DNA from: Podarcis erhardii
Taxonomy: Eukaryota
Direction: 5' to 3' (one strand)
DNA length: 64,000 nt
Assembly (NCBI GenBank): GCA_964252035.1
Contig: OZ176203.1
The notes beneath the pieces were generated by a model. It was not told the origin of the DNA. It did no database searches and was given only the letters and a program-made list of their open reading frames with translations. The translations under genes were made by a program, and so were the position numbers. Below are positions 21,068-59,994 of this stretch, piece by piece (position 1 is the stretch's first letter; each line of letters starts with the position of its first letter).

Positions 21068-21169
21068 CTCGGCCTGTTTCCGGACGACATTGTCCGGGCT
21101 GAGCAGGTTGCCTAGGAGAAGATAGAACTGCTGCTGCTCCTGCTCCGCCGCCGCCGCCGCCGCCGCCAT
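21068..21169 (-). CDS. IPO5: Importin-5 coding exon 1 ([34 protein letters not shown])
   Basis: ATG at 21169 in a GCC-rich Kozak context; matches the known IPO5 N-terminus; donor GAG|gtgact; 102 nt. Confidence 0.97.
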
Positions 21170-22004
21170 GGCTGCCTGAGAGAGAGAGAGAGGCCAGCCG
21201 GGCAGGGAGGAGGGAGGAGGGAGGCAGGAGGCGGGGTCTCCAGGCCGCGCACCGACCACAGGGAGGCGGAGCCGCCGCCGCCGCCGCGCTTCTGATGAAC
21301 TTCTCCCCGCCCCTGCCGGCAACACAGACGCCCCCTCCCTACCGCCCGCCTCCTGCCGACGCCGGGCTGCTGCTGCGGCGCTCCCATTGGGTGCAGGGCG
21401 AAAGGCGGCCTTGCTCCCATTGGGCCGCGGCCCAGCCGCCTTTGTGATTGGGCGGGAAAGCGCCATTGTGAAGTCACTTCCCTCTCGCCTCCCTTAGTCC
21501 GTCTCCCCCTCCCTTGCGGGAGGGGCGGGAGGAGGGAAGCGGTTTGCTTCATCGAGCTGGGCGCCCATTGGCGGGAGGCCCTGGCAGAGGTTCTCTGACT
21601 GGGCGGGAAAACAGTCGGGCGGCCAATAAGGAGGGAGTGGGGGGCGGGGGAGAGAGTAGGAAAAAGGCGGGAGAGTGTGAGGGGACTTGGCCGGCGGGAA
21701 AAGGCCGGCGCGTTGCTCCTGATCTTCGTTGTGCGAAGCGAGCGCGTCGGCTTTGTGTTGTGACCTTACCGCCCCGAGTAGGAAATACTGTGTCCTATAA
21801 GCACAGACCCTCCAAGTGCCCCTATTTTTCCAGAAACCGTTGCGGTTTCTGATCTGCCCCGCTTTTCCTTAGGACGTCCCAGTTTTCATCCGAGAGATGC
21901 TGGAGGTTATGGTAGGACGTCCCTATTTTCCATATTTTCATCGGAGAAATGTATACGAGTTATGCGACCTCCCCTAGCCAAGGAGACGAGTAACTATACA
22001 GCCT

Positions 22005-22110
22005 TTGTCAAAACAAAACAAATTCCTTCCAGTAGCACCTTAAAGACCAACTAAGTCAGTTCTTGGTATGAGCTTTCGTGTGCATGCACACTTCTTCAGA
22101 TACACAGGTT
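22005..22110 (-). mobile_element. Penelope-like element terminal fragment
   Basis: gtagcaccttaaagaccaactaag...gagctttcgtgtgcatgcacacttcttcagatac; a second copy is at 62335-62452. Confidence 0.65.
22066..22103 (-). ncRNA. Minimal type I hammerhead ribozyme motif within a Penelope-like element fragment
   Basis: Minus strand reads GUAU-CUGAAGA-A-GUGUGC(AU)GCACAC-GAAA-GC-UC-AUAC: stem I GUAU/AUAC, stem II hairpin, palindromic AGCU stem III. Confidence 0.7.
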
Positions 22111-22346
22111 TTAGCAGACATCTGAAGTTTTCTAATATTACGGTTTTATATATGTTGGAAGCCGCCAAGAATGGCTGGGGCCACCCAGTCAGATGAGTGG
22201 GGTATAAATAGTAAAAATTATTATCATTCCTATTTTCATCAGAGAAATGTTGCAGGGTATGTAAGCAGCCCCTGACTGGGGGTGAGAAAGAATTTTGCCC
22301 CATTTTGGGTACCCTGCGCTGGGAAAGGGCCCGTTTTGCCTATTTA

Positions 22347-22561
22347 CAGTGGTACCTCAGGTTACATACGCTTCAGGTTACAGACTCCGCTAACCCAGAA
22401 ATAGTACCTTGGGTTAAGAACTTTACCTCAGGATGAGAACAGAAATCGTGCGGCGGTAGCGGGAGGCCCCATTAGCTAAAGTGGTACCTCAGATTAAGAA
22501 CAGTTTCAGTTTAAGAACAGACCTCCGGAACGAATTAAGTACTTAATCCGAGGAACCACTG
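22347..22561. mobile_element. Tc1/mariner (Tigger/pogo-like) MITE; same family at 42002-42243, 46390-46609, 49842-50099
   Basis: cagtggtacctc...gaggaaccactg TIRs flanked by TA. Confidence 0.85.
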
Positions 22562-23354
22562 TATAGGCCATCATATATATAAATGGCATTAATATTATTA
22601 AGATTAATAGGTATGTTTTCCCACCATCTTGATTTGTGGACCCTGTGATTTTTATGGGACTCGTGTCAGCTCCAGCTAGAATAGCCAGTAGGCAGGAATG
22701 ATGGGGGATGTCTGGAAGGCAGAAGATTCCACATTTCGACACTATGGTTCACATATCGTACATGCTTGCATAGGAGCCAGCTCCTAGGCACCAAGGTTGC
22801 CTTGGACCCCCCCAATAAAATATGTGAGGGGGCCAGCTCCCATCCCCCAGTCGTTGGGCATTGCTATTCACATGATGTGTGTGCGCCGTGTCTTGTGATT
22901 GATTATGTAGGGTGGGGCTTACATGGGCCCTCCAGTATTTTGTTCTGGTTGGCACCTCTGTGTGCCCGAGAGTAACTCCCATTGCTGAGTAGATATCTGT
23001 AGGACTGCACTGTGATTTTTTGATTATAGGTTGCTGCATGTCATCTTGCTATGCTCTCGCTCTAAATGATGACACAGCTGTCAAAACTGCCTTCCTTACT
23101 GCCCATAACCATCTTGCCAGATAGTGAATGTGGCCAAATGTGTGTCAAGTAGTTCTGTTGTGTGGTTAAGCATGCTTTAGGTTTTTGCTCCAAGGAAGTC
23201 GTTGCAGTCAGCTTCTCACCCATGAAAGATAGGGCGAATGAATGCTACATATAATGGATGAAGAAAAACCTTCTGCAATTGGGTATTTGTGTGTGTAGGA
23301 TGAAAATTATAAGAGAACATACTTGGTATGATTGCACAAATATCCTTATTTTTA

Positions 23355-23802
23355 TTTTTTTTTATTTTTTTTTTATTTATTTTTTTAAATAATTTTTATT
23401 GATTTTACAACATAAACAAAAAACAAATAAACATAACACGACTTCCCCAAACCTCCCCATCCCTGCATCCATATTTTAAAAATTTTTAGCAATTCTTCAT
23501 CCCATTTTTATATTTAATTCTCTTTAAAAAAATTCTATTTTATAAATTTCAATTTATAGCTGTAATTCTTTGTATCCAATCCCTTGACATCTTAACATTC
23601 CGAAATTTTACAACAATTTTTAAGATAGATTTTAAATTTTTTCCAGTCCTCCTCCACTGTCTCTTTCCTCTGGTCACGAATTCTGCCGGTCATCTCTGCC
23701 AGTCCCATAAATTCAGTCACCTTGGTCTGCCATTCTTCCAGAGTAGGTAATTCTTTAGTCTTCCAATACTTCGCCAAAAGGATTCTTGCTGCTGTTGTTG
23801 CA
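23355..23802 (-). mobile_element. 5'-truncated L1-clade LINE with poly(A) tail and 17-bp TSD
   Basis: TSD aaatatccttattttta at 23338-23354 and 23803-23819; ORF2 end AARILLAKYWK...WQTKV; T-rich head. Confidence 0.85.
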
Positions 23803-25219
23803 AAATATCCTTATTTTTATAATCTGTAAAATGCACAGTGGTGAACACAGAAAGATTGGTATCCCACAAAACTTTGTAGAGTCCCAGACCATTACAGAAT
23901 ATAGAGTTCTGAGAGTTTTGTGGAAATCATGTGATCTAGTCTTAGCATTTCATTGTCAATTAAATCACAGTACATGATTTCATATGATGACAGTATGGTT
24001 GTGTCCTAGCCTAGTGCAAGTAATCTTCGAGCACTTCTATGGCAAAAGTAGTTTTTACTTTCTTTTGAGCCATCAAAACAACTTGTTCCCGTTGGTAGAG
24101 ATAGCAAGCCTTTCATTACTGTCCTTTGCTTGTCTACTCCAGCACAAGTGCCATAGAATTAAATGGAACCTACTCCCAGGGATGTATGTGTGTGTGTAGG
24201 CTTGCAGCCTTTAGCCAGTTACACTGAATCTAGAGTTGCTGTCTCCATGTAATTCCCTATCCCCTCCCAGCTATTCTAAACTCCGTTCAAATTTTGTTTT
24301 CAAAAATCAAGGTTATTCCATGGCTGTCTTCTTAAGGGTTAAACATGAGGTGCATCATCATAATTATTGCATCACCACTTTGTCACAATGGTGACAAGTT
24401 TTTCAGTCCTGTTAACCCCTATGATTAAAAATGCAGTAAAGATTGATCATGTTGCTGTTGCTAATGAGAGTGACATATCTGTAAGACCTCCAGTGCTATT
24501 ATTCTAGAAAAAGAGGTGCCGGAACTTGCCATGAACACCTTCCTTGTTCTCTTATAATGGCAATGCTGCCCAAGTTCTCATTGAAAAAAAGCCTTGTGAG
24601 GAGATTTGTAACTAGCCCTAGAGATATTCTGCTCCAACTCTACCTTTGGCTTCTTTGTATTTTTTTAAAAAGTTTTTTCTACCATGATAGCTGCTACTCA
24701 GGTATCAGGTTAAAGGGGGGAAAGTCAAAGATAAAACCTGCACACTTGTTTGAAATGGAATGGTACCGGCTTCATAATTCCATGAAAATTGGCAAGAAGA
24801 AGGGAGAAATGTTTTGGCACCTTCAATATTATTTGGGTTAGCAAGCTTGAGAGAACCCCAAGGTTTGCAGAAGTACAAATATATATTTAGGGGGAAAGTC
24901 CTAAGGAGGGACTCCCCGCCCCCCACAAAAAGGCAAATTGAGGACTGAGTGGATATAGAATGCTGATGGACTGCTGGAAAAAAACAGTGCAGGAGAATAA
25001 TGCCCAGCAGCTATGGAAAAGTGCATGGCTGGTTGGCATTATTCCTGAGCGGCATCTCTCCAGACAGCACCAATTAGTTGCAGGTCTCATTTGTTAATTT
25101 CAAATATCAAGCTCATGATAAATATTTTATAAAAAATAATTCAGAGAAATCTATGATGAATGCACAAGCACAGATAACATGGTGAGGAGCTGGGTCTTGC
25201 TACAAAACAAAGAAATCCA

Positions 25220-25730
25220 TCAGAATTGCTTTATTCCTCCAAACCCAAGTTTTAAAAAATTACAATATATATCAAAATACAGGCATACAAAGAAAAATAT
25301 GAGGGTATTATAAAGCTGTTATAGGAATTCTAAGGTCTTAAATATAGAACAAATGTTGATAATTGCATACATACCTAAGTATATAAACCACATACCGTAC
25401 AGGGGAGCAATCCAAAAGCCATTTTGGTTCTCCTAAAGATTCTAAATACGGTATTTCCTCTGCCTCCTTAATCCCCCTTGCCTGAGACCAGGTAGGCAGA
25501 TAGCAATCAGGGGAAGTTCCTGAAGGGATTCCTCTCCTATATCTATGAGGCACAGTAACCCCACCTTATGTGTGATGTAATTTCTGGCTGTTTGTGGGGG
25601 TGGGGTGGGTGTCCTTCTGCAAGCCAAAATGCAAATCCTTAAAAAGAGATGTTTCTTCTTGGTTCGGGGTCTCTCCTGCGTCCTTGCAAGGAGGGGAGGG
25701 AACTCTGCTGCAACACTGCATCCTGCCTCC
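25220..25730 (-). mobile_element. Probable L1-like 3' fragment
   Basis: Broken minus-strand ORF (RICILACRR...) followed by an A/T-rich tail. Confidence 0.4.
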
Positions 25731-25855
25731 ATCCATTCATTTCTGACCGATCATGGACTTAGGGCAGGCATGTCCAAAGTCCGTTTTGGGGGACTAATTC
25801 AACCCGCCAGTCGATTTAATCCAGCCCCTGTGGCAGTATGCAGTATATGTCCTGG

Positions 25856-26160
25856 GGTGGGTTAAACCACAGAGCCTAGGGCTTGCTGATCAGAAGGTCG
25901 GCGGTTCGAATCCCCGTGATGGGGTGAGCTTCCGTTGCTTGGTCCCTGCTTCCGCCCACCTAGCAGTTCGAAAGCACATCAAAGTGCAAGTAGATAAATA
26001 GGTACCGCTCCGGCGGGAAGGTAAATGGCGTTTCCGTGCGCTGCTCTGGTTTGCCAGAAGCGGCTTTGTCATGCTGGCCACATGACCCGGAAGCTGTACG
26101 CTGGCCAATAAAGCGAGATGAGCGCTGCAACCCCAGAGTCGGTCATGGGTCCCTTTACCT
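25856..26160 (+). mobile_element. Sauria (Squam1) SINE
   Basis: tRNA-like head gttaaaccacagagcctagggcttgc, conserved body, ccctttacct tail. Confidence 0.88.
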
Positions 26161-26369
26161 AAAATCCTAAAAAAAGCTCAACAACTTTGGTTGGCCCTCA
26201 CTTCATCAAATCTGGCCCACTTTGAAAAAAGTTTGGGCACCTTAGGGGACTTGGGGAGTTGGGCAGCAAAAGCCAACCACCCCTATTTTTTCTACATCAA
26301 AGCCAAATATAAAGTATAACCATCACTTTCTATTCATGTATTTAAAATTTGATATATGAATTGTAGAGC

Positions 26370-26790
26370 TGGAAAAGGTTCCGAAGAGGCTAACCAAAGT
26401 TATTATTAAAGGGCTGAAGCACCTCCCCTATGAGAATAGGTTATAATATTTGGAGAGGACGGGCGTGTTAGAGGCATATAGAATTGTGCACAGTGTGCAG
26501 AAAGATGATAGAAGTCCCCCCTGCAGTAACACTAGTACTCTGGAAGATTCAGCAGACAAAAGGAGGTTCTTCCCCACACAGTACACAAGAATGGCTATGT
26601 ATTGTCTGCAGTGATAGATGCCATGTACCTCTAAATACCATACCGGTTGCTGGGAATCACAAGTGCTGTTACGTTTAAGTCTTGCTTGTGGTCTTCCCAT
26701 AGGCATTTGGTTGGCTACTGTGAGAACAGAAGGCTGGGCTTGGATGGGCCTTTGATCTGATCCAGCCGATCTCTTCTGTTCTTATAAGTG
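26370..26790 (+). mobile_element. CR1 LINE 3' fragment
   Basis: GLKHLPYENRL motif and gggccttt-gatctgatccag CR1-type end. Confidence 0.6.
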
Positions 26791-27451
26791 CATAAAGAAT
26801 AATAATTTAAAACCGGACAACATACCGTATTTTCCCGTCTATAAGAATAGTGTTGTTTTTTTTTCTTTTTAGAAAAAGCTTTAAAATTTGCCCTCGTCTT
26901 AGACATGGGTAGTACAGAGGGCGGTTGGGCAATTGGTAGCAGCCGCGAGCAGGAGATTTTCTGCAGTGACAGGGCAGGTGATTGGTGGCAGTGTGAAGGG
27001 CTGCTAGCGATTGGCTGCCTCTGTGTCAATAGCGGGTTTGATTGTCCGCGGTGGGTGAGTGATTTTTGGCAATTCCACCCCCCAAAAGCTCAATAACTCT
27101 GGGCAATCGTCCGCAAAAAAAGCTCAACAACTACTCTGTGCTATCTCCCGCCATTTTCTTAAATCGGAGTCCCCCCAAATAGGGGGCATCTTATACATGG
27201 GGGCATCCTATAGACGGAAAACTATGGTAAATAACAACAAAAAATATTGGTAGCAATTACCAGTGGCAACATTCAAACAGCACTTAGCCCAGTAATAGTA
27301 GAAAATCTAAACCCCTTTGTCTGTCATGTATCCATTATAGGTACATTCGGGAAAATGATGGCAATGCCCAACATAGATTCCTATAACTTTTTTTTCTTAG
27401 AACAAGGCGCACAGGTTCTAATATCGAAAGGGAAATCTTACATCCACATCT

Positions 27452-27642
27452 CTAGTCTTCTGGGAAATCAAGTTTTCTTTTAATTCCTGAGACCGCTTCT
27501 CTTGTTCCAGGAGAATGGTTCAATTTCTGAGGAGTCTCTGGTTCTGATAGCTGATTTCTTTTCATTGCTGGTGATTGACAGTGACCATCCAAAGGAAGAT
27601 CTGGTTTGGAATTTTCTTGGGCACCAAGTTGTATTGTACGAG
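27452..27642 (-). CDS. APOBEC-like gene, terminal coding exon (ARTIQLGAQENSKPDLPLDGHCQSPAMKRNQLSEPETPQKLNHSPGTREAVSGIKRKLDFPED*)
   Basis: aattttag|CT, phase compatible with the upstream phase-1 donors; 62 sense codons then TAG at 27454-27452; absent from the ORF track in this frame. Confidence 0.7.
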
Positions 27643-28158: not shown

Positions 28159-28201
28159 CTGAAATGCTGTCTGAATCAATCATTTTGTCATTTTCTTCCT
28201 C
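28159..28201 (-). CDS. APOBEC-like gene, 43-nt exon (EEENDKMIDSDSIS)
   Basis: Acceptor ttttttaccccag|GAG in phase 0 matches the main-exon donor; donor TCAG|gtaatg in phase 1 matches the terminal exon. Confidence 0.72.
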
Positions 28202-30029: not shown

Positions 30030-30609
30030 CTGTTTCAAAAGTGTGTCCAGATCATCTGCATTCTCCTTGCTTTCTTCATCCAGATTTGACCATGGCGTAA
30101 AGTTTTCTGATGGGTCTACAAATAGAGCAAAGCATTCTTCATAATCAGATTTGTTCATCATTTTAATCGAAACCCCAGAGCTCTTCAGAAGGTGTAGACC
30201 TTTTTGTTCTCCTTCTCTGTTAAAATAATATGGCCTCGAAGCTTTTATTTCCATGCATATTCCACTGTTTTTTTCCATAAAAGACTTTATCCTGACACTG
30301 CATTCATGGCAAGGGGTGTATGACACAAAAAGGTTCAGTTCATAATTTTCTTTGGTGATGTTTTCTGCGATTTGGTCTTCAATATAATCTAAAACTAAAA
30401 CTTCAGCATGCTTGCCACCAGGATCATTGTACACATAGCCCCAACTTTCCCAAATCAGGTTTTCTTCCTTTTTGAAACTAAACAATAGTAATGTTGTTTT
30501 GCGTATTTTTGTGTTGTCAAAATCTTCTTGGAAGTCTTCTTTCGGACATAGTTTTTTGAGGAAGACTGGCATTTCCTCTGACACTTCTAAACCAGAAACT
30601 TTCAAAAGG
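30030..30609 (-). CDS. AID/APOBEC-family zinc-dependent cytidine deaminase, main exon carrying the whole catalytic domain
   Basis: HAE at 30410-30402, x29 spacer, SYTPCHEC (P at 30314); downstream family-type motifs SRPYY, GLHLLKSSGVSIKMM, DYEECF, FTPW; strong acceptor tttatctttacag|C and donor CAG|gtaaaa; no stops; first in-exon ATG at 30572. Confidence 0.93.
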
Positions 30610-30721
30610 CTGTAAAGATAAAAGGGCATTTAAAGTAGAAATAGAAAAATGCTTTTGTCCATCAGAACTACAAGCACCACCCTCAACACATGGCTGGGTA
30701 GGGGGGGATTAGTTCTTCATT

Positions 30722-31070
30722 GGTAAAGGGACCCCTGACCATTAGGTCCAGTCGTGACTGACTCTGGGGTTGCGGAGCTCATCTCGCTTTATTGGCCGAG
30801 GGAGCCAGCGTACAGCTTCCGAGTCATGTGGCCAGCATGACTAAGCCGCTTCTGGCGAACCAGAGCAGCACACGGAAACGCCGTTTACCTTCCCGCTGGA
30901 GTGGTACCTATTTATCTACTTGAACTTTGACGTGCTTTCAAACTGCTTAGGTTGGCAGGAGCAGGGACGAAACAACATGAGCTTACCCCGTCACGGGGAT
31001 TTGAACCTCCAACCTTCTGATCGGCAAGTCCTATGCTCTGTGGTTTAACCCAGAGCACCACCCGCGTCCC
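30722..31070 (-). mobile_element. Sauria (Squam1) SINE, full length, in the intron upstream of the APOBEC main exon
   Basis: Reverse complement of the gggacgcggg...ccctttacc consensus. Confidence 0.9.
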
Positions 31071-31576
31071 TTACTGACCTTCAAAATGTGTGGGTAGTTG
31101 AGAGGCCAACTGACAGTACCCCCATTTACAGGGGCCAGCGGAGAGCCCCCAAAAGTCAAGGAAGGGGCAGGGCTGAGCCAGTCTCACATCTGTGGCATGA
31201 CTGCATTGGACCCCAATTCAGGTCCACTTGTCCCACCCAACCACCTTCCACCATAACTGCAATGAGTGGCAGAGTTGTCGATGCAACTGTGGCTCTGTTG
31301 CTCCACAAATCCCCCCCGTAGGTAGCAGGAGTTGGGACTGCACTCAAAGTGCCCATTCTAACCTGAGAGTCCCATTGAACTAAGAGTGACTTACTACTGA
31401 GTAAACATGATTAAGGCTACATTGTAAGAGGTCCTTTCTAATAAAGTGCTGTACTGTATTGTTTTGGATGCCAGCTAAAAATGTTTTGTTAGGCAAGCCT
31501 GCTCAGACATGTAATTTTGTTTTGTGTATTTGTTTTAAAAATCAATTTTATTTATATCTTGATAACCTTTATGTCT

Positions 31577-31935
31577 GGAACGTGGGTGGGTGGCGCTGTG
31601 GGTTAAACCACAGAGCCTAGGGCTTGCCAATCAGAAGGTCATGGTTTGAATCCCCGTGACAGGGTGAGCTCCTGTTCCTCAGTCCCTGCTCCTGCCAACC
31701 TAGCAGTTCAAAAGCATGTCAAAGTGCTAGTAGATAAATAGGTACCGCTCTGGCGGGAAGGTAAACGGTGTTTCCATGCACTGCTCTGGTTCGCCAGAAG
31801 TGGCATAGTCATGCTGGCCACATGACCCGGAAGCTGTATGCCGGCTCCCTCGGCCAATAAAGCGAGATGAGCGCCGAAACCCCAGAGTTGTCCGCAACTG
31901 GACCTGATGGTCAGGGGTCCCTTTAACTTTACCTG
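31577..31935 (+). mobile_element. Sauria SINE with 12-bp TSD
   Basis: TSD acctttatgtct at 31565-31576 and 31936-31947. Confidence 0.92.
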
Positions 31936-31948
31936 ACCTTTATGTCTA

Positions 31949-32428
31949 CAGTAGTACCTTGGTTCTCAAACTTAGTCCGTTCCAGAAGTCCATTCCAAAA
32001 CCAAAGCCTTCCAAAACCAAGGCACGCTTTCCAATAGAAAGAAATGCAAAACGGATTAATCCATTCCAAACTTTTAAAAACAACCCCTTAAACAACAATT
32101 TAACATGAATTTTACTAACGAGACCATTGATCCACAAAATGATAGCAATAAACAATGTACTGCATTCACACAAACAATCAGTAGCTGAACTGGGTTCCAC
32201 ACAGTCACAAAAACAAAACAAAAAGAGCTGCAAAAACAAAAACGCAAAATAAATAGCAGAAACAGACAGACCTCAGCGTAAAACTCAAATCGAAAGCATA
32301 ACACTCAAAACAGAGCATGTTCAGCTTCTAAAAAAGGTTCACAAACCGGAACACACACTTCCAGGTTTGCAGTGTATGGGTTCCAAGTCATTTGAGTACC
32401 AAGGCGTTTGAGAACCAAGGTACCACTG
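31949..32428. mobile_element. Tigger-like non-autonomous DNA transposon
   Basis: cagtrgtaccttggttctcaaac TIRs; TA TSD. Confidence 0.85.
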
Positions 32429-46673: not shown

Positions 46674-46674
<1 letters not shown>

Positions 46675-47818: not shown

Positions 47819-48040
47819 GCGTGAAACGAGAGGAGCAAAGACAGATACACAGGCGTAGTCTCCGATTGCTTAGAAAAAGCTCTGGAGAGGAGGAGACAGA
47901 GACTGCTGTGGGGAGGCAGGAACCTTCAGTGTGGCAACTGATTTCATGGAGTAAGACCTATGGGGAATGAGCTGCTGAGCTCATTAGTCCTGACACTCCA
48001 CCAAGTCTGTGGAGATAGTGGGTTTGCTAATAAAGAGTTA

Positions 48041-48560
48041 CCCTATTTTTCGCTCTATAGGACGCACCCGACCATAGGATGCACCTTGTTTTAGAGGGGG
48101 AGAGCAAGTAAACAAAATTCTCCCCCTCTCTGCTCAGCACCCCTTCAGCGAAGTGGCAGGAGAAACGGAGCCCCTTCCATTTCTCCTCCCGCTTGGCTGA
48201 AGGGGCGCTGCGCAGCTCTCCCTCTCTGCTGAAGCCAGGAGAATCTTGCTCTCCTGGCTTCAGCAAAAGGAACCTGAAGCCTGTGGAGTGCAGCAGGAAC
48301 TTGTGCTGCGCTCTGAAGTCTTCAGGGGCCATCCCTGAAGCCTGGAGAGCGAGAGGGGTCGGTGTGCACCGACCCCTCTCGCTCTCCAGGCTTCAGCGAA
48401 AGCAACGCAAAGCCTCCAGAGCGTGCTCCCTCTGCGCTTTGGAGGCTTCGCGTTGCTGTCACTGAAGCCAAGGAGCCTGCATTTGCTCCATAGGATGCAC
48501 ACACATTTTCCCTTAATTTTTGGAGGGGAAACAGTGCGTCCTATAGAGCGAAAAATACGG
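48041..48560. mobile_element. Tc2/Kanga-like MITE; related copies at 26825-27227, 42523-42880, 60115-60373
   Basis: ccgtattttt...aaaaatacgg TIRs; TA TSD. Confidence 0.8.
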
Positions 48561-49270
48561 TAACTCCAACTTCAAACTGTGATTTGCTGGACTGGCTGGT
48601 TTTGTGACAGTTGATGTGAGCAACTGGGGTGGGGTGGGGGAAAGCGCTGTAAAATCTGGATGGTAGGGGAACAAATTCACTGTACTCTGAGGCAGTAATG
48701 TGAACACACTACTAGAAGAGATCTGCTCCAAGTTCTTGTGTTAATTGCTCCAGTATCTCCCCAGCCCCCACTTCTAATTTTCCTTCAGCAGTAAATTTGC
48801 ATTATTCCCTCAAAGCAAAGCTAATGAAATTATTTAAACCTGAATGAGTTTTGGGTTTTATGTGACACGCAATCAATTTATTACATTATTTCACTGGATT
48901 GTTCTATTGCTGGAAGCAGCGCGAGAAATTCCTCATAGATGACTTTTGGAGGTAACCCGTGTCTCTTTCCAAGCGCATCTCAATAATGCTGTGTTATGAT
49001 CCTTGAATAATTAAATTAGTGGGGTTTCATTGGAAAGGGGATTTAGCATTCTCCACATCGTCTGCTGGGCTAATCCACATTACAGGAAAAGCAAAGAATC
49101 AGTCGTTTGGCACTTGTTTATATGAATAGTCAAGTCAGCTGAAGTGTGGTTATGACATTGAATTTGGATGGTCACTTACAGATTTCAAAAAAAGGGGGAA
49201 AGTATCACCGGAATTAGAGGACAAAAAAAGAACACTGATTTACATAAGTTTTGCATAAGTTACTTTAGAC

Positions 49271-49406
49271 CAGTGTTTCCCAAACTTGCGTCGCCTGCTG
49301 TTTTTGGACTGCAATTCCCATCATCCCTGTCCATTGGTACTGCTACCTAGGGATAATGGGAGTTGTAGTCCAAAAACAGCTGGAGATCCAAGTTTGGAAA
49401 ACGCTG
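49271..49406. mobile_element. 136-bp hAT MITE with 8-bp TSD; related copies at about 37352-37487 and 58176-58312
   Basis: TSD ctttagac; same internal ctacaa/ttgtag palindrome. Confidence 0.88.
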
Positions 49407-51789
49407 CTTTAGACTTATAGATGCAAATTTAGAAGTAATTACTGTAAATACAGTAAATGTCTCACCATACCAGAGAATACTGTGCAACTTCAGCAGGAAA
49501 AATGAGATTGGATAATTTTAGGGACAAGTTATCTAGGAGATGGGAGTTGCCTTGCTTAATTTTAATCAGATGCTCTCTGTATATTCTGCGATATTCAGAA
49601 CAAAGAGAAGAAGTTGTTATTACTATTGCCTCTGCAGTAATACCAGCATTACACCTGCTTTAGAATATGTTGATTGCTTAAGCAGTTGAAATCAGCAGTA
49701 TTAGTAAATCCCAGATTGCTGGTGGGGAGAAGGTTGAGATTGAGGAGGAGGACTAGCTCCTTGTCTAAGGCCAGCTAGTGAGTTCACAGCAAAGGTAAGA
49801 TTAAAAGCAAGGACTTTTGATTCACAGCTCAGCTACATAGTCAGTGGTACCTCGGGTTAAGTACTTAATTCGTTCCGGAGGTCCATTCTTAACCTGAAAC
49901 TGTTCTTAACCTGAAGCACCACTTTAGCTAATGGGGCCTCCCGCTGCTGCCGCGCCGCCGGAGCACGATTTCTGTTCTCATCCTGAAGCAAAGTTCTTAA
50001 CCCGAGGTACTGTTTCTGGGTTAGCGGAGTCTGTAACCTGAAGCATCTGTAACCTGAAGCGTATGTAACCTGAAGCGTATGTAACCTGAGCTACCACTGT
50101 ATATTTGCATTTCGGACCACTTGCAAGGTATCTGAGAATCCTGGTAAGGAATTCTCATCCTCATCCACAGAACTACAGCTCCTGAGGAAATGGGAACAAG
50201 GATTAAACCAGCAGTATGGCACATATTTTAAGAAGTGTTTAGGGTATTCTTGAAGGGCATAAAATAAGCAGCGTCCTCTCTAATGGTCACGTCTGTCCTA
50301 GAAATATTAGAAAAGCAGAAACACGATGCTGTAATCCTAATTGCCCCCTTTCAACATCTCTTCAAACATTATTTCCCGACTTGGAATAACTTTAAGTGCC
50401 CAATAACAGGCTCTTAAACGTAGATTAGGTTTATGACATTCAGTGTAAATGTTTACATTTCTAGAAGAAGAGTCTGAGCTCAAGGCTGTCTGGAAACCAT
50501 ATCCTGAGGCCATGTAGGCCTGTCCTTAGCGCCAGATGCACAGATGCTGATCGTACTTTCTTTGTGATTATTCTGTGTGTGCTCAGAGGCACTGATTATT
50601 GTGTTAAGACATAATCCTTCGACTGAAAACAGGTTCTAGTGGTAAGTGATGCACCAAAGTTTGTTTTTTTAAAGACTGCAATAAAATGTGCAGCAATTTA
50701 GAAGAAGAATAAAAACAGCAAATAAAAGCATCAGGGACAAACTCTTCAGAATAATTGCACCTCAAATCTGTTCTGTCAGGAATTAAGCATTTCCTCTTAA
50801 ATTTCTTGATTTTTCCACACAAGGAGATCATACTATAAAGTATAAGGTATGTTCTTCCTTGAACTGGCCAAACTAATGCTAGGATCTATAAATGTTGGTT
50901 CTTTCAATTTCCATTTTTTCCAGTCTTAAAATTCTGTTTTCTACATTCTGCAGTAATTTGTGATTCCCCCCCCCCCGAAAAACCCACAAACCCATAATGA
51001 AAACACTTCAGCATTTTAGTGCAAATTTCTCCTAATAAACATTTTTCGACGCAGTTTCCACTACATATTTTTGCATCCAGTTTCTCTGGATTAGGATATA
51101 TTTGCATATGTTCATATATGTGTGTGTGTGTGTGTGTGCATGTGTGCACTTTTATGCAAACTTCCACCTAGCAGATGCATTTGTATATACATTGTTTGGT
51201 TGGAGGACTGTATTGCAAAATTCGCAAAAGTACAAATTTCTAAGGAGAGCTGTGTTTCGAGTTCTCGTTTCAGAGACTGTCACTCCGACAGGTTTGAGCT
51301 GAATTGATTTCCATCCCCAATGCCTGTTGCCAACATGGACCAAGCCTGAGACCAACGTGTTCATTCAGAACTAGACCAAAAGTGCCGAAAAGGAAAGGTA
51401 TCGCTTGAATGTTGTTGCCGCTACAGCTTTATTCTCTCCACCCCCCCCTTTTAAGTAAACTATACACTGGTCTTTCATCAACCTGGTAATTCCAAGGCAC
51501 CATCTGCCATCAAAGGAAACTCCAGTGTATATGTGGCAGTAGCAACTGTACCGATAGTTGGGCGGAAGGAAAAGCATCACTGAGGATGTCCTGATAACTT
51601 CTAAATGTTTGGACCCAGCCGCTAGGTGTGGCTCTTTCAATGTCCTGCTCATCTAAAGGCAGAGAGGATGTTTGGGCACAGAGCAAAAAGCAAAGGCTGT
51701 TTCCCTTAGGTAATAGGAAGAACACCGGGGGGTGTGCTGCAGTAATTATGAAATGATAGAAGAAGCGGGGTGGGTTCGTTTATTTATAA

Positions 51790-51921
51790 TGTTATGAGAA
51801 TTTTAAGGTCTTAGATACAGAATATATGTTCATAAATGCATACATATCTAAATATATGAACTACGTGTCTGAAATAGTATGGGAGAGCAATCCTGAAGCC
51901 ATTTTGACTCTCCCAATGATC

Positions 51922-51970
<49 letters not shown>

Positions 51971-52816
51971 TTTATACCCCGCCCATCTGGCTGAGTCTCC
52001 CAAGCCACTCTGGGTGGCTCCCAATCAAGTGTTAAAAACAGTACAGCATTAAATATTAAAAACTTCCTTAAACAGAGCTGCCTTCAGATGTCTTTTAAAG
52101 ATAGGATAGCTGCTTATTTTCTTCACATCTGAAGGGTGGGCGCCACTACCGAGAAGGCCCTCTTGTCTGGTTCCCTGTAACCTCGCAGTGAGGGAACCGC
52201 CAGAAGGCCCTCGGCGTTGGATCTCAGTGTCTGGGCTGAACGATGGGGGTGGAGACACTACTTCAGGTGTACAGGATATATTCAAATATTCCTCTGCAGT
52301 AAGGGAGGCAAATGGGGAAAGCCTTCCCATTGTATTTTTCCCTTGCAAATCCTGTCTTACCGGCGTATTTGTGTATGAATAGGGTGAACCTGTGACCTGG
52401 ATTCAGGAACTAAAGTATTTACCATCACAAAAGAATGGCCAGGCTGCCCAGGTAATGCAACCAGTGACCATTATCAGGTATCCTGACAGACAGGATTTCT
52501 GCTGTAGACCACCTCTTTCTGTGATGTATATATGTTTTAGGGGTGGTGGTCTTGGGCTACGGGGTGGGCAATTTCAAAAGTCTATATAAGGGCTTGCGCA
52601 CCATTGTTCAGGGTTCTCCTCTCCTGCGTGTGGTGAATGGGGACCCTGTTGCAACTGTTCCTTTAATAAAAATCAGGCTTACTAGCCACTTTGCTTCTCA
52701 ATATACTCTGGTTGGCCTCTGTTATTTTCTCCTACTGACGGGGAATCCAATTAAGGACGCTGTACTGCTCTGGAATACCCCATAAAGGAAAAGGAGCAGT
52801 TTCCCCCCTTATAACA
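51790..52816 (+). mobile_element. Solo ERV/Gypsy-type LTR with 4-bp TSD, interrupted by an L2 fragment
   Basis: tgttat...ataaca termini; TSD ataa; TATATAA at about 52583, AATAAA at about 52665; L2 inserted at about 51923-52277. Confidence 0.85.
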
Positions 52817-54665
52817 ATAATATCACAGTAAAACAAATCATAGAACTGTAGAGTTGGAAGGGACCACAAGGCAAGGATCATCTAGTACAACCCTTTCAAA
52901 GAAGGTATCTTAAACCCAACATGGGACAAGAATCCACAACCCTGATGTATCCGATTTGCAGACTAATATATGGTAAATCTTTTCCTACATTGGGCATGTG
53001 ATGTTGCCACATGCGTCTGTATCTGAAAACTTATCACTGTGTATTAGTCCACAAATGGTATGAATTGGTGCTTTTATGAAAAATATAAGGTTGTTAAACG
53101 AGTCTCTTGAAGTGTAGCCAGAGATGGCAAGTGATCATTTTAATGAAAAACTCTCCTCCAATCATATACATTTGTCAGGGATCGTGAAGCCCATTCTTTA
53201 GTTATTTAATAAAAAAATAACAGCTGTAAACAGTGACTGTAAACAGATCTATAGTTCATCTTTTGAGATACTGAAGTAAGGGTAAGTTCAGCTAAATCAA
53301 TGAAAGGTGAGGGCAGAAAGAACACTTTATCTAACGAAACAATGTACAAATATCTTTATTGATAATTCAGTTTGCTTACATTGTAGTAACCGTAACAGTT
53401 GATTTTTAAGTATCCATAAAAAGCAAAATACACAAATATTTTACATGTTCATAACACTATATTAAAACAAATAATATTAGCTGCAACAAGCAGCCTAATT
53501 TACCTCCCCTAATCCACCTGCTCTGGTATGAGCAGCGAAGGGAAGATAAAACTCTATGGAAAAGCGGTACAGATCTCTCCGTGAATGTATCCCGTTTTGC
53601 TGATAAAAAGGGGAAAACATTTCAATGGCAGTGAAGGGCAATCCTGAACCAAGAACCACATGGCATACTGCATACGTAAACCTCTTTTGCGTCCATCATT
53701 CATTGGAGAGCCGAAATATTGTTTCCTTGTACTTTTAATTAAGAGCCACAACCCAATGTACACCACACTATTTATATGACCAGCGTTTATTGTGTTACAC
53801 ATGTAGGCCATGATCCAGCACAGAGAAATTCACAGGATCTTCACAGTTTCCAGAGGTCTACTTGTGTTAATCCGTTGCAACAAAGCCAGCAAATGGTTCT
53901 GTGTCACCTTAAAGACTTAACCGATTTATTAAGGCATCAAGATTTTGTGGGCTAGAGTCCACTTCGTCAGATAAATGAAGGGTTGTTTCCATAAGCTGGC
54001 AGGTTTATACTGTACATGGGATCAAGCGGCAATGGAATGCATGAAACAATTCAGTTAAAGGATGCAAAGAGAGAGGAAGAGACCAAGTGGTTGGGGAAGA
54101 ACTCTGTATCCAGTTGGGATGTCTAAATAGTGGAAATTTAAAAACAGTCGGACCTTTTCCTGTCTGTTTAATTATCTTATATTTGTATTGCTTCAGAAAA
54201 TATTTGTATAGTAGAGGTAGTTCCTTATTTGGCTACATTTTTAAAAAGAGCTTATAGATAGATCTGTTAGGCTTGCCTTGCTCCTCTCTTCAACATCAGC
54301 CTTAAGGCTGCCTGCTGATCAGAAGGACAACAACATCCTGGTCAGATGTTAGCAGTTTGATCTGCAGAAATCAGCAGTTTGATATGCAGAAATTCACATG
54401 TGACGTTTTTGGCAGCATGGAAGTAACCATTATCACTTGCTACTGTCTGCAGCATAATCTGCTTTTAAAGGCACAGCATCAGGAATCAGTACAGTCATAC
54501 ATCGTGTTGCGTTAGGTTCATGTTGTGTCTTTTCAGCTTGCGAACGCGGCAAACCCAGAATTGTATACTTCCAGGTTTCACCGAACGCGCAGAAGTGCTG
54601 CTCTAGTTGTAGACTTTTTGGGGTGCGAACGGCACAGATCATGTCCACAACTAGAGGTACCACTG

Positions 54666-54693
54666 TATGTGTGTGTGTGTGCGTGTGTGCGTG

Positions 54694-54725
<32 letters not shown>

Positions 54726-54726
54726 T
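54666..54726. repeat. Compound (GT)n-(GC)n-(AC)n self-complementary microsatellite
   Basis: Direct inspection. Confidence 0.9.
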
Positions 54727-56689
54727 GGTTGGCAACCCCAATCAGTGTACGGAAAACCAACATTTCTGGAAAGGTTACTATTCTCAAAAATACTGCATAA
54801 AATGAAATGTGAGGATAATATATTTAGAATACACAATTGTCTAAAGATTAGAGAGCATTTATGCTCTGCATCCATAATATATGACCAACGCATGTTCCAC
54901 AGGTGACCAAATTCCTGCACGGAAGGCAATTTGTTAAAAACCCACACATGGATTTTGTTGCATGTCAGGATGTGCCCAAGGTGCTTTCCACAGAGGAATT
55001 TAGGATCGAGTGTAACAGCTCTAAGACACATTAAAATAAACTCATCAAGGGGAAAATACCCCCATACATCATACAATGAAGACTACATTTTAAATAGAAT
55101 TACAAATATCATATATGTACAGTACTGAAATACTAGAAACAGTAGCAATAATACTGAGCAGATTCAAATAGAAAATTTATTCGGTTTCCCATTGACTTCA
55201 GAGGTTAAAAGTGCTAGTCGACTGTCAGTGGTAAACCACTGATCAGAACCATTGTTGGATTGACCATGCCAACATTAATACTTTTGCCTCTCTCAAACTA
55301 ACTGCTAAAGAGCATGGCAAGATTAAGGTGAAAGCAGTGAGTGTGTGTGTATGCGCACAGAGTTTATGGCTAATACTAAAGCACATGAATACATTTCATA
55401 TCTAGGACCTTCACCCATGCATTTTTCTTTTTCTGTGGTATTTTTCACCAGAAATAAAGAGTGTGTACAGCATATTCACTACGGTTGAATTATTCAATCT
55501 CTTAAGACCTAGGACACAAGACCTTTGATTTCTTACACATCTGCTTTCATCCTAATTGCCAAAGAATCATGGGAACTGTAGTGTTTGTTAAGGGTGCTGG
55601 GAGTTGTAGCTTTGCGAAGGGTAAACCAGTTCTTGGGACTCTTTGGCGGAAGCCATGAACTTTAAATGTACACAGCCTCAGAGGATGATAGAAAACAACC
55701 CACAATTGTTTCATTATAGTTCTGTTTAACGTTCCAATATAGTTTGTCATGAGCTCAAAGTGATGAGGGCAGTTTTATAAAAACCCTATCTATGGTGACA
55801 CACCATAACACATTGGCAACATCGTGCACAATTCTTTTTGCAGCTTTCATTCATTTTAGTAGGTGCTTGTGCAGAGAAATTTCCTGGTGGAATGTCCTTT
55901 AGTCATCCATTCATATGCATATTTACTGCCTACCACCATCAATGAGGCTTATTCTCTACTACTTTTCCCCCCAACAGTTTAGGAACTGCTGCCTAAATGA
56001 TGTTCCCCAACAGAGAGGGGCACATTTAGTGCCTGAGAAACAACATCCCATGTTCTGAACTCACCTGTGGGGGGAAAGATTATATATTCTAGGAATTTGC
56101 CATCCTTTTTAACCTTGCCTCAAATCTGCTATCTGGGGTGAATGTCTCTCTCTACCTCCTAGTAGGGCCAGCCAGGGATGCTTTAACAACAGTGGATCTC
56201 GCCACAGGGCCAAGGATCTGACTAGCCTTGAAGCTGCCAACTTTTATGGGCCTGTGGTCATGTTTGGAATTTGGGAAAAGTGCCATGGGTGGGCACCAGT
56301 CACAAAATAGCTGCCACAGGGTGAAGGGCATAACAAAAAAATAAAAATAAAAAAATGGTTGCCACATCTAGAGAAGCAGAAAAGAGACAGAAATGCGGAA
56401 AAGGTGTAAACATGCCCCCAGTCAGTGCCTGCTCTTGCTCATAGAAAGATCATTGCCCCTCTCCTCTGTTTTGAATGGGTGGGTGTTCAATCTTTACATG
56501 TTTATGGGGGCTGGTGTAGGGCAGGCTAAGTCAGTGGAAGCAAGAACGGCATTGAGGATGTGGGTTTTTGAGGGGATATTTACTGAGATCCTTTGCAAAC
56601 ACCATGAAGGGTACTCACAGGCATCATGTTGGCGGTGCCTGCTTTTTTAGCTCAGATTATATATAACCCAGAACAATTTTATTAATTTC

Positions 56690-57137
56690 TATTATGGTTC
56701 TCCCAGTAGTGATGTATGGAAGTGAGAGCTGGACCACAAAGAAGGCTGATTGCCGAAGAATTGATGCTTTTGAATTATGGTGCTGGAGGAGACTCTTGAG
56801 AGTCCCATGGACTGCAAGAAGATCAAACGTATCCATTCTTAAGGAAATCAGCCCTGAGTGTTCACTGGAAGGACAGATCCTGAAGCTGAGGCCCCAATAC
56901 TTTGGTCACCTCATGAGAAGAGAAGACTCCCTGGAAAAGACCCTGATGTTGGGAAAGATCGAGGGCACAAGGAGAAGGGGACGACAGAGGACAAGATGGT
57001 TGGACAGTGTTCTCGAAGCTACCAGCATGAGTCTGACCAAACTGTGGGAGGCAATGGAAGACAGGAGTGCCTGGCGTGCTCTGGTCCATGGGGTCACGAA
57101 GAGTCGGACACGACTAAACGACTAAACAACAACAACA
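56690..57137 (+). mobile_element. RTE-BovB LINE, 3' end of ORF with (CAA)n tail
   Basis: ORF 56694..57125 YGSESWT...RIDAFELWCWRRLLRVPWTARRSN...QYFGHLMRR is the BovB C-terminus. Confidence 0.92.
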
Positions 57138-57747
57138 CAGTGGAACCTCTACTTACCACCATAATCCGTTCCGGTGGCCCGTCCTTTAGGTGAAACGGGT
57201 CACTGGTAGAATTGCCGTTGTGCGCATGCGCAGACGGCAGAAGCTGCTTTTGCGTGTGCGCCACGGTCGCAACTTGGATCGGGCCCAAGTAGAGGCGGTC
57301 GTAAGTAGAGGTTCATCCTTGTTGTAAGCTTTAAACCTATTTTAACTAGCAGTAATATCTTTCAATGCACAAAAAAAATCTGCTCCTGGCAATGCACAAC
57401 ATGTTTATTACAAACACATTTTCTCTCGCACGCGCCCCATTCGTACAGGCATTAATGGGACCTGCCCATGTTTTATTATTTACTACTCTAGGTTTGGTTA
57501 TGTCTGAGATTTATAAAATGCTAACTGTGTGCTCTTTAGATAAACATAGGTAAAGATAGGGATCCAACATTTTCGACACTGATAGGTGCTAGACCTCTGA
57601 GAATATGTGGGTAGTTTCTTTTGCCATGGAAATAGTAAGAGCGAGCTCTCAAATGCAGGAAATCATTTGCAAGTTAAGTTATACTCTTCTCTATAACAGA
57701 GATGAGAAACACCTAAAACTGAGATGGTATAGAGTCAGGGCTGGGAG

Positions 57748-57901
57748 TAAAGGTAAAGGTACCACTGACCGTTAGGTCCAGTCGCGGACGACTTTGGGTT
57801 TGCGTGCTCATCTCGCTCTATAGGCCGAGGGAGCTGGCGTTTGTCCGCAGACAGCTTCCAGGTCATGTGGCCAGCATGACTAAGCCACTTCTGGCGAACC
57901 A
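57748..57901 (-). mobile_element. Sauria SINE, 3' fragment
   Basis: aaggtaaaggt...ctggcgaaccag matches the other copies. Confidence 0.8.
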
Positions 57902-59432
57902 GATTTGCTAATTTGCATAGCCTTATTTTTTTAAATTTATTCTGTAATGTTTACTACTTTGCACCATTTAGGCTGGCCAGTCCTGGGCGAGGGAGCAAAG
58001 TGGTAAGCAAGGCACTGAAACCTCATGCCAACCCTCCAAATCTTCAGAAGAAAGTTGACATTCTGAAGACAATGAATTCTGTGACTGCTACCATATTCTG
58101 TACCTTTTCCATGTGCAATTGCAGAACACAGAACATACTTAACGTCCGCATGCTTGGGGCAGTTTATTCATATACCGGTATTTCTCAAACTTGGGTCTCC
58201 AGCTGTTTGTTGGACTACAACGCCCATCATCCATGACCATTGTTCCTGCTAGCTAGGAGTGATGAGAGTTGTAGTCCAACAACAGCTGGAGACCCAAGTT
58301 TGAGAAACATTGATACAGTCGTATCTTGGTTGTTGAACGGAATCCATCCCGGGAGTCCGTTCGACTTCCAAAAACGTTTGACAACCAAGGCGCAACTTCT
58401 GATTGGCTGCAGGAGTTCCCTGCACTCAATTGGAAGCCGTGTTGGACGTTCAGCTTCCAAAGAACGTCCGCAAACCAGAACACTTGCTTCCGGGTTTGTG
58501 GCGTTCGGGAGTCAAAACGTTCGAGTCGCAAGGTGTTTGAGATCCAAGGTATGACTGTACTTGGTGAGGGAGAAATAATGGTAGTGTCTTTTTAAGAGCT
58601 CCAGAGTCGTAACCAGTGATGACTGGTTAACCCAGCATCAGACAGGGGTTGTTATGGCAAAGAGAAGAAATTGCATCTTTGATATGGGCCCACGGAGTGC
58701 CGCCCTGATCCCTGAATTGCTTAGGCTTCAGAAAATGGAGTACCAGATGCTGACCAGAAGTTAGCCACTCCTACTGTTTGTTCTCAGGCAGAGCTGTTGA
58801 AGAATATACATTTTCCCCACGGAAAGAAGACCAGTCTCCAAAGACGCATTCCACTCTGCTCCTGCAAATTCCTCTATCGTCCTTACCTCAATCACTCTAC
58901 AGCTTGTGGCTCGCTAGGCCAAACACAGATCCCTGCTTATGTAAACGGACTTGCCAGGAGCCTGATCAGCCTTCTTGGGTTTGCTGCCTGCCTGGTGGGG
59001 TGAATGCAGCTTTGTAGATCATGAGGCTGTGCAGGCCTGATCGGATCCTCTGATGAGAAATTGGTTTTACTTGCCATTTCCACCAGTGGAATGCAGCTGA
59101 GTTCCTGCTGACATGCTTATGGCTTCAGGACTCTGCTGGCGTTTTAAAAAATTCAGTTGCGTTGCTTTTCCCTGCTGCCAATCCTCCCTACATGGACACG
59201 CTTGCATTTTTCTTACTTAACAGCAGATTGTTTTGAGCCGGATTATGCTCTTTTAATTTTGTTTCTGGCTATGTGGGTAAAATATTGATATATTTTTAAA
59301 GCTGTGGTGGTGTTTGGTTTGGTTTTTACTCCACGACACGATGCGACATGCTTAATGCATCAAGATGCAATTTGCACATTTGATAAGGGATTATGTTTTG
59401 GACACGCCTGTATCTTTTAATCTCTCCCACCA

Positions 59433-59477
<45 letters not shown>

Positions 59478-59862
59478 TACAGTAATTTATAGACAAAGCT
59501 GGCTTTGTCCTAAACAATACCCATGGTATACTATATACAAAGAATTATTACTCAGGCTCCCAGGGCTAGTTCAATGAATACAGAGTTGTTTCGTTCACAG
59601 GATTGGAGAGTGATCTGGAAGTGCTCATTCCGAAGAGTTTAAGTGCTTTCAACAAGGGGTTTTCTTTTTTTGCGTCTCCTGGTGATTTTCATGTGTTCAA
59701 ATAGCTACGGGCGCCGTGCGTAATCACAACTGGTACAGACTGTAAGCAAAGTTTTGCAATTTGGTTTCCCGAGCAAACTCCAAACTCGTTTCTCCCCGGA
59801 AATCTGCTGTTTTTAACGTTAACAGTCTTTTGTCGCAGGAGCTGAGGGTACACTTCCCTTTC

Positions 59863-59994
59863 TTAAGACGAGCTGTACTTGTTACTGGAGCGGAAATTGT
59901 CATACCCGTGATCATTGGCTCTGAACTTTAAGCAGGAGTGCTTCTCTTCCAGGGACAGCATATCTTTCGAATGGCACCAGCAACACAGACATGA
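59863..59994 (-). CDS. EDNRB: Endothelin receptor type B, last coding exon ([43 protein letters not shown])
   Basis: ttcaag|TCA...TAA; diagnostic ETB C-terminus [17 protein letters not shown] and the palmitoylation CLCCWC cluster. Confidence 0.96.

Follow-up and report, generated by a model that had tools for sequence, protein, structure and literature searches.

A probably old EDNRB-APOBEC5-IPO5 gene order shared by lacertid and iguanian lizards

In a 64,000-nucleotide stretch of the Podarcis erhardii genome (GCA_964252035.1, contig OZ176203.1; the whole stretch is referred to as the window), EDNRB and IPO5 stand head-to-tail on one strand with a single recognisable gene, a cytidine deaminase, between them. 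We conclude that EDNRB-APOBEC5-IPO5 is probably the normal gene order of lacertids and iguanians, derived from an old rearrangement that preceded their split, and that the deaminase is probably APOBEC5 and was not created at the junction. The distance from the EDNRB stop codon (59863) to the IPO5 start codon (21169) is 38.7 kb, and EDNRB, the deaminase and IPO5 are all on the minus strand. The initial annotation, which had placed the EDNRB 3' end and the IPO5 5' end about 38 kb apart on the same strand, was accurate in this respect, and the two positions it gave, 21169 and 59994, coincide exactly with exon boundaries.

Table 1. Positions of predicted genes, flanks and candidate breakpoint intervals in the window
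Feature	Position	Strand	Evidence or remark
EDNRB exon 5 (TM6 region)	63678..63811	-	AG acceptor, GT donor; 7tm_1 Pfam match; 97.7% identity to L. agilis EDNRB residues 315-358
EDNRB exon 6 (TM7)	61362..61470	-	Splice sites; 100% identity to L. agilis EDNRB residues 360-395
EDNRB last coding exon	59863..59994	-	Splice site; stop TAA at 59865-59863
Putative ancestral EDNRB 3' flank (3' UTR and conserved non-coding elements)	50342..59862		Collinear blastn matches downstream of EDNRB
Likelier old-breakpoint interval, if APOBEC5 came with IPO5	30610..50341		Repeat-rich, no recognisable gene
APOBEC5 main exon (entire deaminase domain, ATG at 30572)	30030..30609	-	Acceptor and donor; Pfam NAD1 8e-39, APOBEC2 1e-42; spliced contigs X15, X18
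APOBEC5 43-nt middle exon	28159..28201	-	AG/GT sites, in-frame EEENDKMIDSDSIS; tblastn match
APOBEC5 last exon (tail with PQK and KRKL motifs)	27452..27642	-	Stop TAG at 27454-27452
APOBEC5-IPO5 spacer (6.3 kb; alternative breakpoint place)	21170..27451		Similar spacing in L. agilis and Phrynocephalus
IPO5 coding exon 1	21068..21169	-	In CpG island at 20-22 kb; peptide begins annotated L. agilis and Phrynocephalus genes
IPO5 internal exons (at least 12 visible)	787..15602	-	Minus-strand ORF list; Pfam TPR_IPO5, IBN_N, TPR_IMB1 and HEAT_EZ matches

EDNRB is a pigment-cell receptor gene. Its last three exons were located on the minus strand by sequence inspection, and AG/GT splice sites were seen at exons 5, 6 and the last exon (Table 1). 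The translations of the three exons showed 98-100% identity to Lacerta agilis EDNRB residues 315-438, and the C-terminal tail showed 88-95% identity to the EDNRB of gecko, Varanus, turtle, gharial and guineafowl, versus only 47% to an EDNRB2-like representative. Homologues across species were gathered from a search with EDNRB exon 5, via Varanus EDNRB. The EDNRB copies were also counted, as the initial annotation had asked, and one gene per lacertid species was found in the 90% cluster. Judged from sequence, this copy is the canonical EDNRB (type B1 endothelin receptor), a single copy at the original locus. Downstream of it, the conservation linked to EDNRB reached, by blastn, to window positions 50.3 kb in the gecko Heteronotia, 51.6 kb in Pogona, 53.3 kb in Sceloporus and 54.8 kb in Vipera, and a conserved element at ~53.3 kb was found in the turtle Mauremys as well. 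EDNRB thus appears to have kept 9.5 kb or more of its ancestral 3' flank, which gecko shares and turtle shares in part.

The gene downstream of the deaminase starts with an ATG at 21169-21167 on the minus strand, and its exon 1, bounded at 21068 by a GT donor, is contained in the sole CpG island of the window. Exons at 15.4, 14.7 and 11.9 kb gave Pfam TPR_IPO5 matches in profile order. The exon-1 peptide is the start of annotated genes of 1100 aa in L. agilis and 1099 aa in Phrynocephalus, the latter of which carries a TPR_IPO5 annotation. These matches identify the predicted gene as IPO5 (importin 5).

The gene between EDNRB and IPO5 is a three-exon AID/APOBEC deaminase on the minus strand (30609-27452), the main exon of which showed 91% identity to a Podarcis muralis protein. 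Spliced contigs from two runs of a related species, X15 and X18 (presumed RNA), contained exactly the predicted exon joints; the second part of the contigs started exactly at 27642, and the middle exon explains the 42 letters between the matched parts. The zinc-coordinating H-x-E...P-C-x-x-C core was present as HAEV...PCHEC in exon 30572-30030, and 11 Pfam models of the AID/APOBEC superfamily matched the deaminase, with the APOBEC2 model scoring slightly higher (146 bits) than NAD1 (134 bits, cut-off 27). APOBEC2 was considered as the identity of the deaminase and rejected, as it was the weakest match among solved structures, the closest of which were APOBEC3G (the best), APOBEC3F and AID, and the tail carries the A5 motifs.

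Deaminases of the APOBEC5 (A5)/NAD1/UA2 family are reportedly the subject of a 2011 paper by Severi. The Z-domain pattern of A5, HAEx3L..SxSPCxxCx6F..Y..LxxLx3GVx4M, has been published together with PxK and KRKL tail motifs (bioRxiv 10.1101/2025.05.21.655229). The strict pattern, which is given as >80% conservation and not as invariant, was unmatched by the deaminase, and it was matched when a small tolerance was allowed (T for the second S; spacings off by 1-2). The extended C-terminal tail contains PETPQK and KRKLDF in the last exon (27642-27455), and the PxK/KRKL motifs were found also in the proteins of Podarcis, Zootoca, Pogona, Phrynocephalus, Sceloporus and Anolis. The lizard gene thus resembles the family in its HAE...PCxxC zinc site, its LxxLx3GVx4M motif and its long tail ending in PxK and KRKL, and also in being single-copy in lacertids and fast-evolving (dN/dS of 0.83 versus Lacerta); it differs in that SxSPC reads SYTPC here and a loop lacks two residues relative to the published consensus. 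By these family hallmarks we assign the predicted protein to APOBEC5 (synonyms NAD1 and UA2), the product of an ancient jawed-vertebrate gene.

The initial annotation had regarded the deaminase as consistent with a gene having been born, or inserted, where the chromosome broke. A gene that arose or was inserted there, as a new or transposed gene, would fit the fast evolution, the repeat-rich surroundings and a word search for APOBEC5 in which matches were confined to lacertids, iguanians and Varanus. Against this origin are the introns at conserved places, the APOBEC5-specific tail motifs, the Pfam NAD1 match far above its cut-off, and published surveys that place NAD1 in fishes, coelacanth, amphibians, lizards and marsupials (Krishnan 2018, PMC5889660). 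Because the matches of our search were confined to those lizards, it is the literature that argues against a squamate-only clade. With a family reported from jawed fish to marsupials, we consider birth or insertion of the deaminase at the breakpoint very unlikely and favor an APOBEC5 that was carried to the junction or was there already.

We searched the interval between EDNRB and IPO5 for other genes. Neither Ras G-box combinations nor a SLAIN motif, the signatures of RAP2A-like and SLAIN1-like sequence, were found between the two genes in six frames, in keeping with the earlier claim that no SLAIN1 or RAP2A exons lie there. The 13 longest intergenic ORFs, 12 of which are in the likelier breakpoint interval, could not be credibly assigned to a Pfam family, the one match listed being to APD1-4_M (E=0.0095, 16.6 bits, below the curated cut-off). 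Neither an Rfam family nor a tRNA turned up when the interval was scanned. About its repeats, described previously as a TE-dense junction, the description was qualitatively right: 17% of the interval occurs as repeats inside the window itself, and of the 200-bp bins between 27.4 and 33.4 kb, over half had a summed depth of hundreds to 100,000-fold over unique sequence. The likelier breakpoint interval extends from the last conserved element linked to EDNRB to the APOBEC5 main exon.

The same gene order was found in other lizards. On Lacerta agilis CM020419.1, EDNRB ends at 81,948,057, APOBEC5 occupies 81,916,884-81,914,425 and IPO5 starts at 81,908,175, with order and strand as in the window. 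Over the regions compared, the window was collinear with L. agilis DNA at 64.0-50.4 and 38.7-17.6 kb, and the stretch between these two blocks, compared by size only, is 11.7 kb in the window and 11.2 kb in L. agilis. The flanks examined in Pogona and Sceloporus cover EDNRB-APOBEC5 and stop short of IPO5. On Pogona CM117497.1, EDNRB ends at 158,909,189 and APOBEC5 starts at 158,965,320 on the same strand, and on Sceloporus CM032821.1 APOBEC5 follows EDNRB on the same strand, 82.7 kb apart. In Phrynocephalus, APOBEC5 is followed by IPO5. The APOBEC5-IPO5 spacing is 6.25 kb in L. agilis and 6.3 kb in Phrynocephalus, and exceeds 10 kb in Pogona and Sceloporus. The accession numbers of EDNRB and the deaminase are consecutive in Podarcis muralis and Zootoca and near-consecutive in P. 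lilfordi. The adjacency, treated at first as a feature of this genome, is common to Lacertidae, Agamidae and Phrynosomatidae, and its occurrence in such distantly related lizards therefore suggests an old rearrangement.

These comparisons also bear on whether the adjacency could be produced by an assembly error or by a dispersed EDNRB duplicate, both of which the initial annotation had named. The window contains a single run of N, at 5384-5516 within IPO5, leaving the EDNRB-IPO5 interval without a gap, and the order recurs in six or more further assemblies (coordinates show it in three, accession numbers in another three), which argues against a misassembled join. The single EDNRB gene per lacertid species, the retained introns and the ancestral 3' flank argue against a dispersed paralog. 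We find either artefact or duplicate extremely improbable.

Whether the lizard order is ancestral or derived was judged from chicken, for the EDNRB side only, and from the mammalian map. Human 13q22 and 13q32 carry MYCBP2-SCEL-SLAIN1-EDNRB and MBNL2-RAP2A-IPO5-FARP1, respectively, and human EDNRB lies beside SLAIN1, SCEL and MYCBP2, as in chicken. On chicken chromosome 1, SLAIN1, EDNRB, SCEL and MYCBP2 are listed at 155-156 Mb, and IPO5 is not listed in that megabase (PMC10976558, PMC13718421). Lizards have the same genes as human and chicken; EDNRB has kept its exon structure together with 9.5 kb or more of its 3' flank, and IPO5 its CpG-island start, but the 3' partner of EDNRB is APOBEC5 and IPO5 rather than SLAIN1, and RAP2A is no longer the upstream neighbor of IPO5. 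Since chicken and human keep EDNRB with SLAIN1, SCEL and MYCBP2, we infer from these two that the lizard order is derived, as the initial annotation had proposed, and older than the lacertid-iguanian split. The reverse polarity, in which EDNRB-(APOBEC5)-IPO5 would be ancestral for tetrapods or sauropsids and the human and chicken arrangement derived, would require two identical rearrangements, given that birds, not mammals, are the nearer relatives of squamates, and it is at odds with the SLAIN1, EDNRB, SCEL and MYCBP2 neighborhood common to human and chicken. The 10 kb around EDNRB in elephant shark, gecko and turtle, and around the EDNRB-type gene in gar, held no called gene; gecko and turtle are in this respect compatible with either order, but the failure of tblastn to find APOBEC5 within 10 kb of any of these four genes weighs against an ancestral order, which we consider unlikely. 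A search for literature linking EDNRB or APOBEC with IPO5, or on chicken IPO5-FARP1, found nothing useful.

A derived order may have come about as follows. A chromosomal rearrangement before the lacertid-iguanian split would have cut the ancestral amniote EDNRB-SLAIN1 linkage 9.5 kb or further downstream of EDNRB, and the free end would have been fused to the region upstream of IPO5. APOBEC5, an ancient vertebrate cytidine deaminase of single-stranded nucleic acids that was lost from birds and placental mammals, would have been carried to the junction or been there already; it more likely came with IPO5. One paracentric inversion of the whole EDNRB-to-RAP2A segment, as the initial annotation had proposed, would be a special case of this rearrangement, and would place SLAIN1 and RAP2A tail-to-tail at the reciprocal junction. 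Starting from the human order and strands, it would give EDNRB head-to-tail with IPO5, as observed, and the intact EDNRB flank is what a clean break predicts, but RAP2A-IPO5 linkage is documented in mammals only, and we hold the single inversion as a tentative possibility.

EDNRB-APOBEC5-IPO5 provides a clean, dated squamate synteny marker, which lacertids and iguanians possess and the viper has in altered form; neither a gene of a new type nor a new mechanism is revealed by it. The order further pins down where in the genome lizard APOBEC5 lies, the neighbors of which were not found in a limited search of the APOBEC5/NAD1 literature, and shows where remnants might be sought in birds and placental mammals, which lost the gene.

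In the viper (one assembly), EDNRB is followed by BIVM in a tail-to-tail pair, and APOBEC5 was not found there. The C-terminal BIVM fragment alone gave no Pfam match, and the BIVM call is therefore taken from one precomputed domain label for the whole 502-aa product. The position of BIVM after EDNRB suggests that this flank was broken a second time. It is conceivable, if somewhat doubtful, that the intergenic stretch 3' of EDNRB is a re-used squamate breakpoint, with a break before the lacertid-iguanian split that led to APOBEC5/IPO5 and a later snake inversion from the APOBEC5 side to BIVM that gave the viper pair. Like re-used evolutionary breakpoint regions, it is a repeat-rich stretch between conserved genes that was seemingly broken twice (to APOBEC5/IPO5 in lizards and to BIVM in the viper); it differs from them in that no breakpoint sequence signature was identified here and that the snake case consists of one assembly and one domain label. 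If the breakpoint was re-used, the 3' regulatory flank of EDNRB would have been given new neighbors twice.

EDNRB, APOBEC5 and IPO5 all lie on the minus strand of the window. The window holds the three terminal coding exons of EDNRB. Translated, they match residues 315-438 of Lacerta agilis EDNRB at 98-100% identity. For the C-terminal tail, identity is 88-95% with the EDNRB proteins of gecko, monitor, turtle, gharial and guineafowl, and only 47% with an EDNRB2-like protein. In these searches the exons were used as separate queries. Exon 1 of IPO5 is followed by at least 12 more exons, reaching about 0.8 kb, and the Pfam TPR_IPO5 matches in the IPO5 exons follow one another as they do in the profile. 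The initial annotation had placed EDNRB directly upstream of IPO5 on the same strand, about 38 kb away; exon mapping confirmed this, with 38.7 kb separating the stop codon of EDNRB from the start codon of IPO5, and the coordinates it had proposed, 21169 and 59994, coincide with exact exon edges. The sole N run in the window (5384-5516) is within an IPO5 intron.

Exons of EDNRB, APOBEC5 and IPO5 mapped on the window
Feature	Position	Strand	Remarks
EDNRB coding exon	63811-63678	-	proper acceptor/donor sites
EDNRB coding exon	61470-61362	-	proper acceptor/donor sites
EDNRB last coding exon	59994-59863	-	stop TAA at 59865-59863
APOBEC5 main exon	30609-30030	-	ATG at 30572; entire deaminase domain
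APOBEC5 middle exon	28201-28159	-	43 nt
APOBEC5 last exon	27642-27452	-	
IPO5 exon 1	ATG at 21169, end at 21068	-	inside the window's only CpG island

The same order was found in other lizards. On Lacerta agilis CM020419.1, EDNRB ends at 81,948,057, followed by the deaminase at 81,916,884-81,914,425 and by the start of IPO5 at 81,908,175, all on one strand. The fetched DNA of this species is collinear with the window at 64.0-50.4 kb and 38.7-17.6 kb, and the stretch between the compared parts is of the same size (11.2 vs 11.7 kb). The deaminase starts 56 kb past the EDNRB end in Pogona vitticeps and the corresponding gap is 82.7 kb in Sceloporus undulatus, on the same strand in both species; in Phrynocephalus, the deaminase is followed 6.3 kb on by a gene with IPO5 domains. 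EDNRB and deaminase proteins have consecutive accession numbers in Podarcis muralis and Zootoca vivipara and near-consecutive ones in P. lilfordi. The EDNRB-IPO5 join is real and not a misassembly, given the collinearity in L. agilis and the same order in Pogona, in Sceloporus and in further lacertids. Since the order occurs in lacertids and iguanians, it is at least as old as their common ancestor, which published timetrees place at well over 100 million years.

The two iguanian stretches also contain a second APOBEC5-like exon with HAE...PCxxC, intact and unannotated (L002:350-860 in Pogona, L008:2430-2970 in Sceloporus), which shares the strand of the annotated APOBEC5 and lies about 9 kb upstream. 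Its identity to APOBEC5 is about 40%, the two species' copies are 50% identical, and the lacertid window has no counterpart.

We found that the EDNRB of the window is the original gene. A relocated duplicate, raised as an alternative explanation of the adjacency, is contradicted by the 90% cluster, which has a single EDNRB gene for each lacertid species, by the retained introns and by a downstream flank of collinear conserved non-coding elements. These elements are common to the gecko Heteronotia as far as window 50.3 kb and to Pogona, Sceloporus and Vipera over shorter spans, and one at about 53.3 kb also occurs in the turtle Mauremys. EDNRB therefore took with it 9.5 kb or more of its ancestral 3' flank, and the break has to fall between window 50.3 kb and the promoter of IPO5. 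A public Komodo dragon EDNRB model of 610 aa (P0024) carries an insertion of ~170 residues between exon-6 and exon-7 sequences that resembles translated repeat sequence, and a 422-aa model of this Varanus komodoensis gene is without it.

In two association studies of chicken, SLAIN1, EDNRB, SCEL and MYCBP2 are listed together on chromosome 1 at 155-156 Mb, in a bin without IPO5, RAP2A or FARP1 (PMC10976558, PMC13718421). The MBNL2-RAP2A-IPO5 linkage is documented in mammals only. The chicken group is the gene neighbourhood of human 13q22. Because birds are nearer to squamates than mammals are, a state shared by birds and mammals is most simply ancestral, and the lizard EDNRB-APOBEC5-IPO5 order is probably derived, the comparison on the IPO5 side being with mammals only. 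A single inversion, as the initial annotation proposed, is one possible origin of this order and would predict a reciprocal junction with SLAIN1 and RAP2A tail-to-tail in lizards.

A different neighbour was found in the single Vipera latastei assembly, where BIVM, and not APOBEC5 or IPO5, adjoins the 3' side of EDNRB. The 3' end of an opposite-strand gene of 502 residues with a Pfam BIVM domain lies 9.8 kb past the EDNRB 3' end (L012:42909-43083), tail-to-tail with it; the viper EDNRB has a canonical tail, and its conserved flank elements end earlier. Word searches found no snake APOBEC5. Snakes descend from the lacertid-iguanian common ancestor, so the viper arrangement is a later change. The EDNRB/BIVM pair of this one assembly would result from a second inversion reaching from the APOBEC5 side to BIVM, if the human gene order from IPO5 to BIVM is assumed as its basis.

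The three-exon deaminase is the single recognisable gene between EDNRB and IPO5. The interval contains neither a SLAIN motif nor a set of Ras G-box motifs in six frames, in agreement with the initial annotation, which had recognised no SLAIN1 or RAP2A exons there. Its longest ORFs gave no credible Pfam family, the sole listed match being below its cut-off, and Rfam and tRNA scans gave no family and no tRNA. It is repeat-rich, as claimed: 17% is repeated inside the window, and in a DNA run from this organism the multi-copy depth is very high for most bins at 27.4-33.4 kb. The stretch 35850-37310 is G+C-rich (52.6% G+C in the 36-38 kb bin) and not a CpG island, with long ORFs on either strand, none of which has a Pfam match, a 21-bp tandem repeat at 36608-36666, and 75-78% identity to Lacerta against 88-92% in the surroundings. 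A conserved retroelement tail at 56693-57137, with a 143-aa ORF without Pfam match, also occurs at unrelated places of the Lacerta, Pogona, Sceloporus and Vipera loci and is a widespread squamate repeat.

Judged from its sequence, the deaminase is APOBEC5. It matches Pfam NAD1 at 8e-39, with the APOBEC2 model scoring slightly higher, and its nearest solved structures are APOBEC3G, APOBEC3F and AID, with APOBEC2 last. A 2025 preprint describes, for APOBEC5, a conserved Z-domain pattern whose last part is LxxLx3GVx4M and a disordered tail that contains PxK and KRKL motifs (bioRxiv 10.1101/2025.05.21.655229); the window protein, which carries LHLLKSSGVSIKMM, PETPQK and KRKLDF, shares a pattern of this type and both tail motifs. 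NAD1/A5 has been described in ray-finned fishes, coelacanth, amphibians, lizards and marsupials and was lost in archosaurs and placentals (PMC5889660; bioRxiv 10.1101/2025.05.21.655229). Gene birth at the breakpoint, as initially suggested, is therefore not supported. The observation of the initial annotation is confirmed and its interpretation partly supported; the gene order is a lineage-specific rearrangement that is well-defined but ordinary and hosts a known, ancient deaminase. The short APOBEC5-IPO5 distance in lacertids and Phrynocephalus favours an origin of APOBEC5 on the IPO5 side of the old break; the distance of >10 kb in Pogona and Sceloporus counts against this. In published accounts of APOBEC5/NAD1 we found no description of its genomic neighbours.

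Contigs from two runs of a related species, which we guessed to be RNA, join 30606/30565-30029, 42 letters and 27642-27400, in exact agreement with the splicing predicted for the gene. A further 107 letters at the 5' end of one contig suggest an upstream untranslated exon. The deaminase exon (30030-30572) evolves fast, differing from L. agilis by 11% in nucleotides and 23% in amino acids (dN/dS 0.83); against agamids, where dS is saturating, dN/dS is about 0.3.
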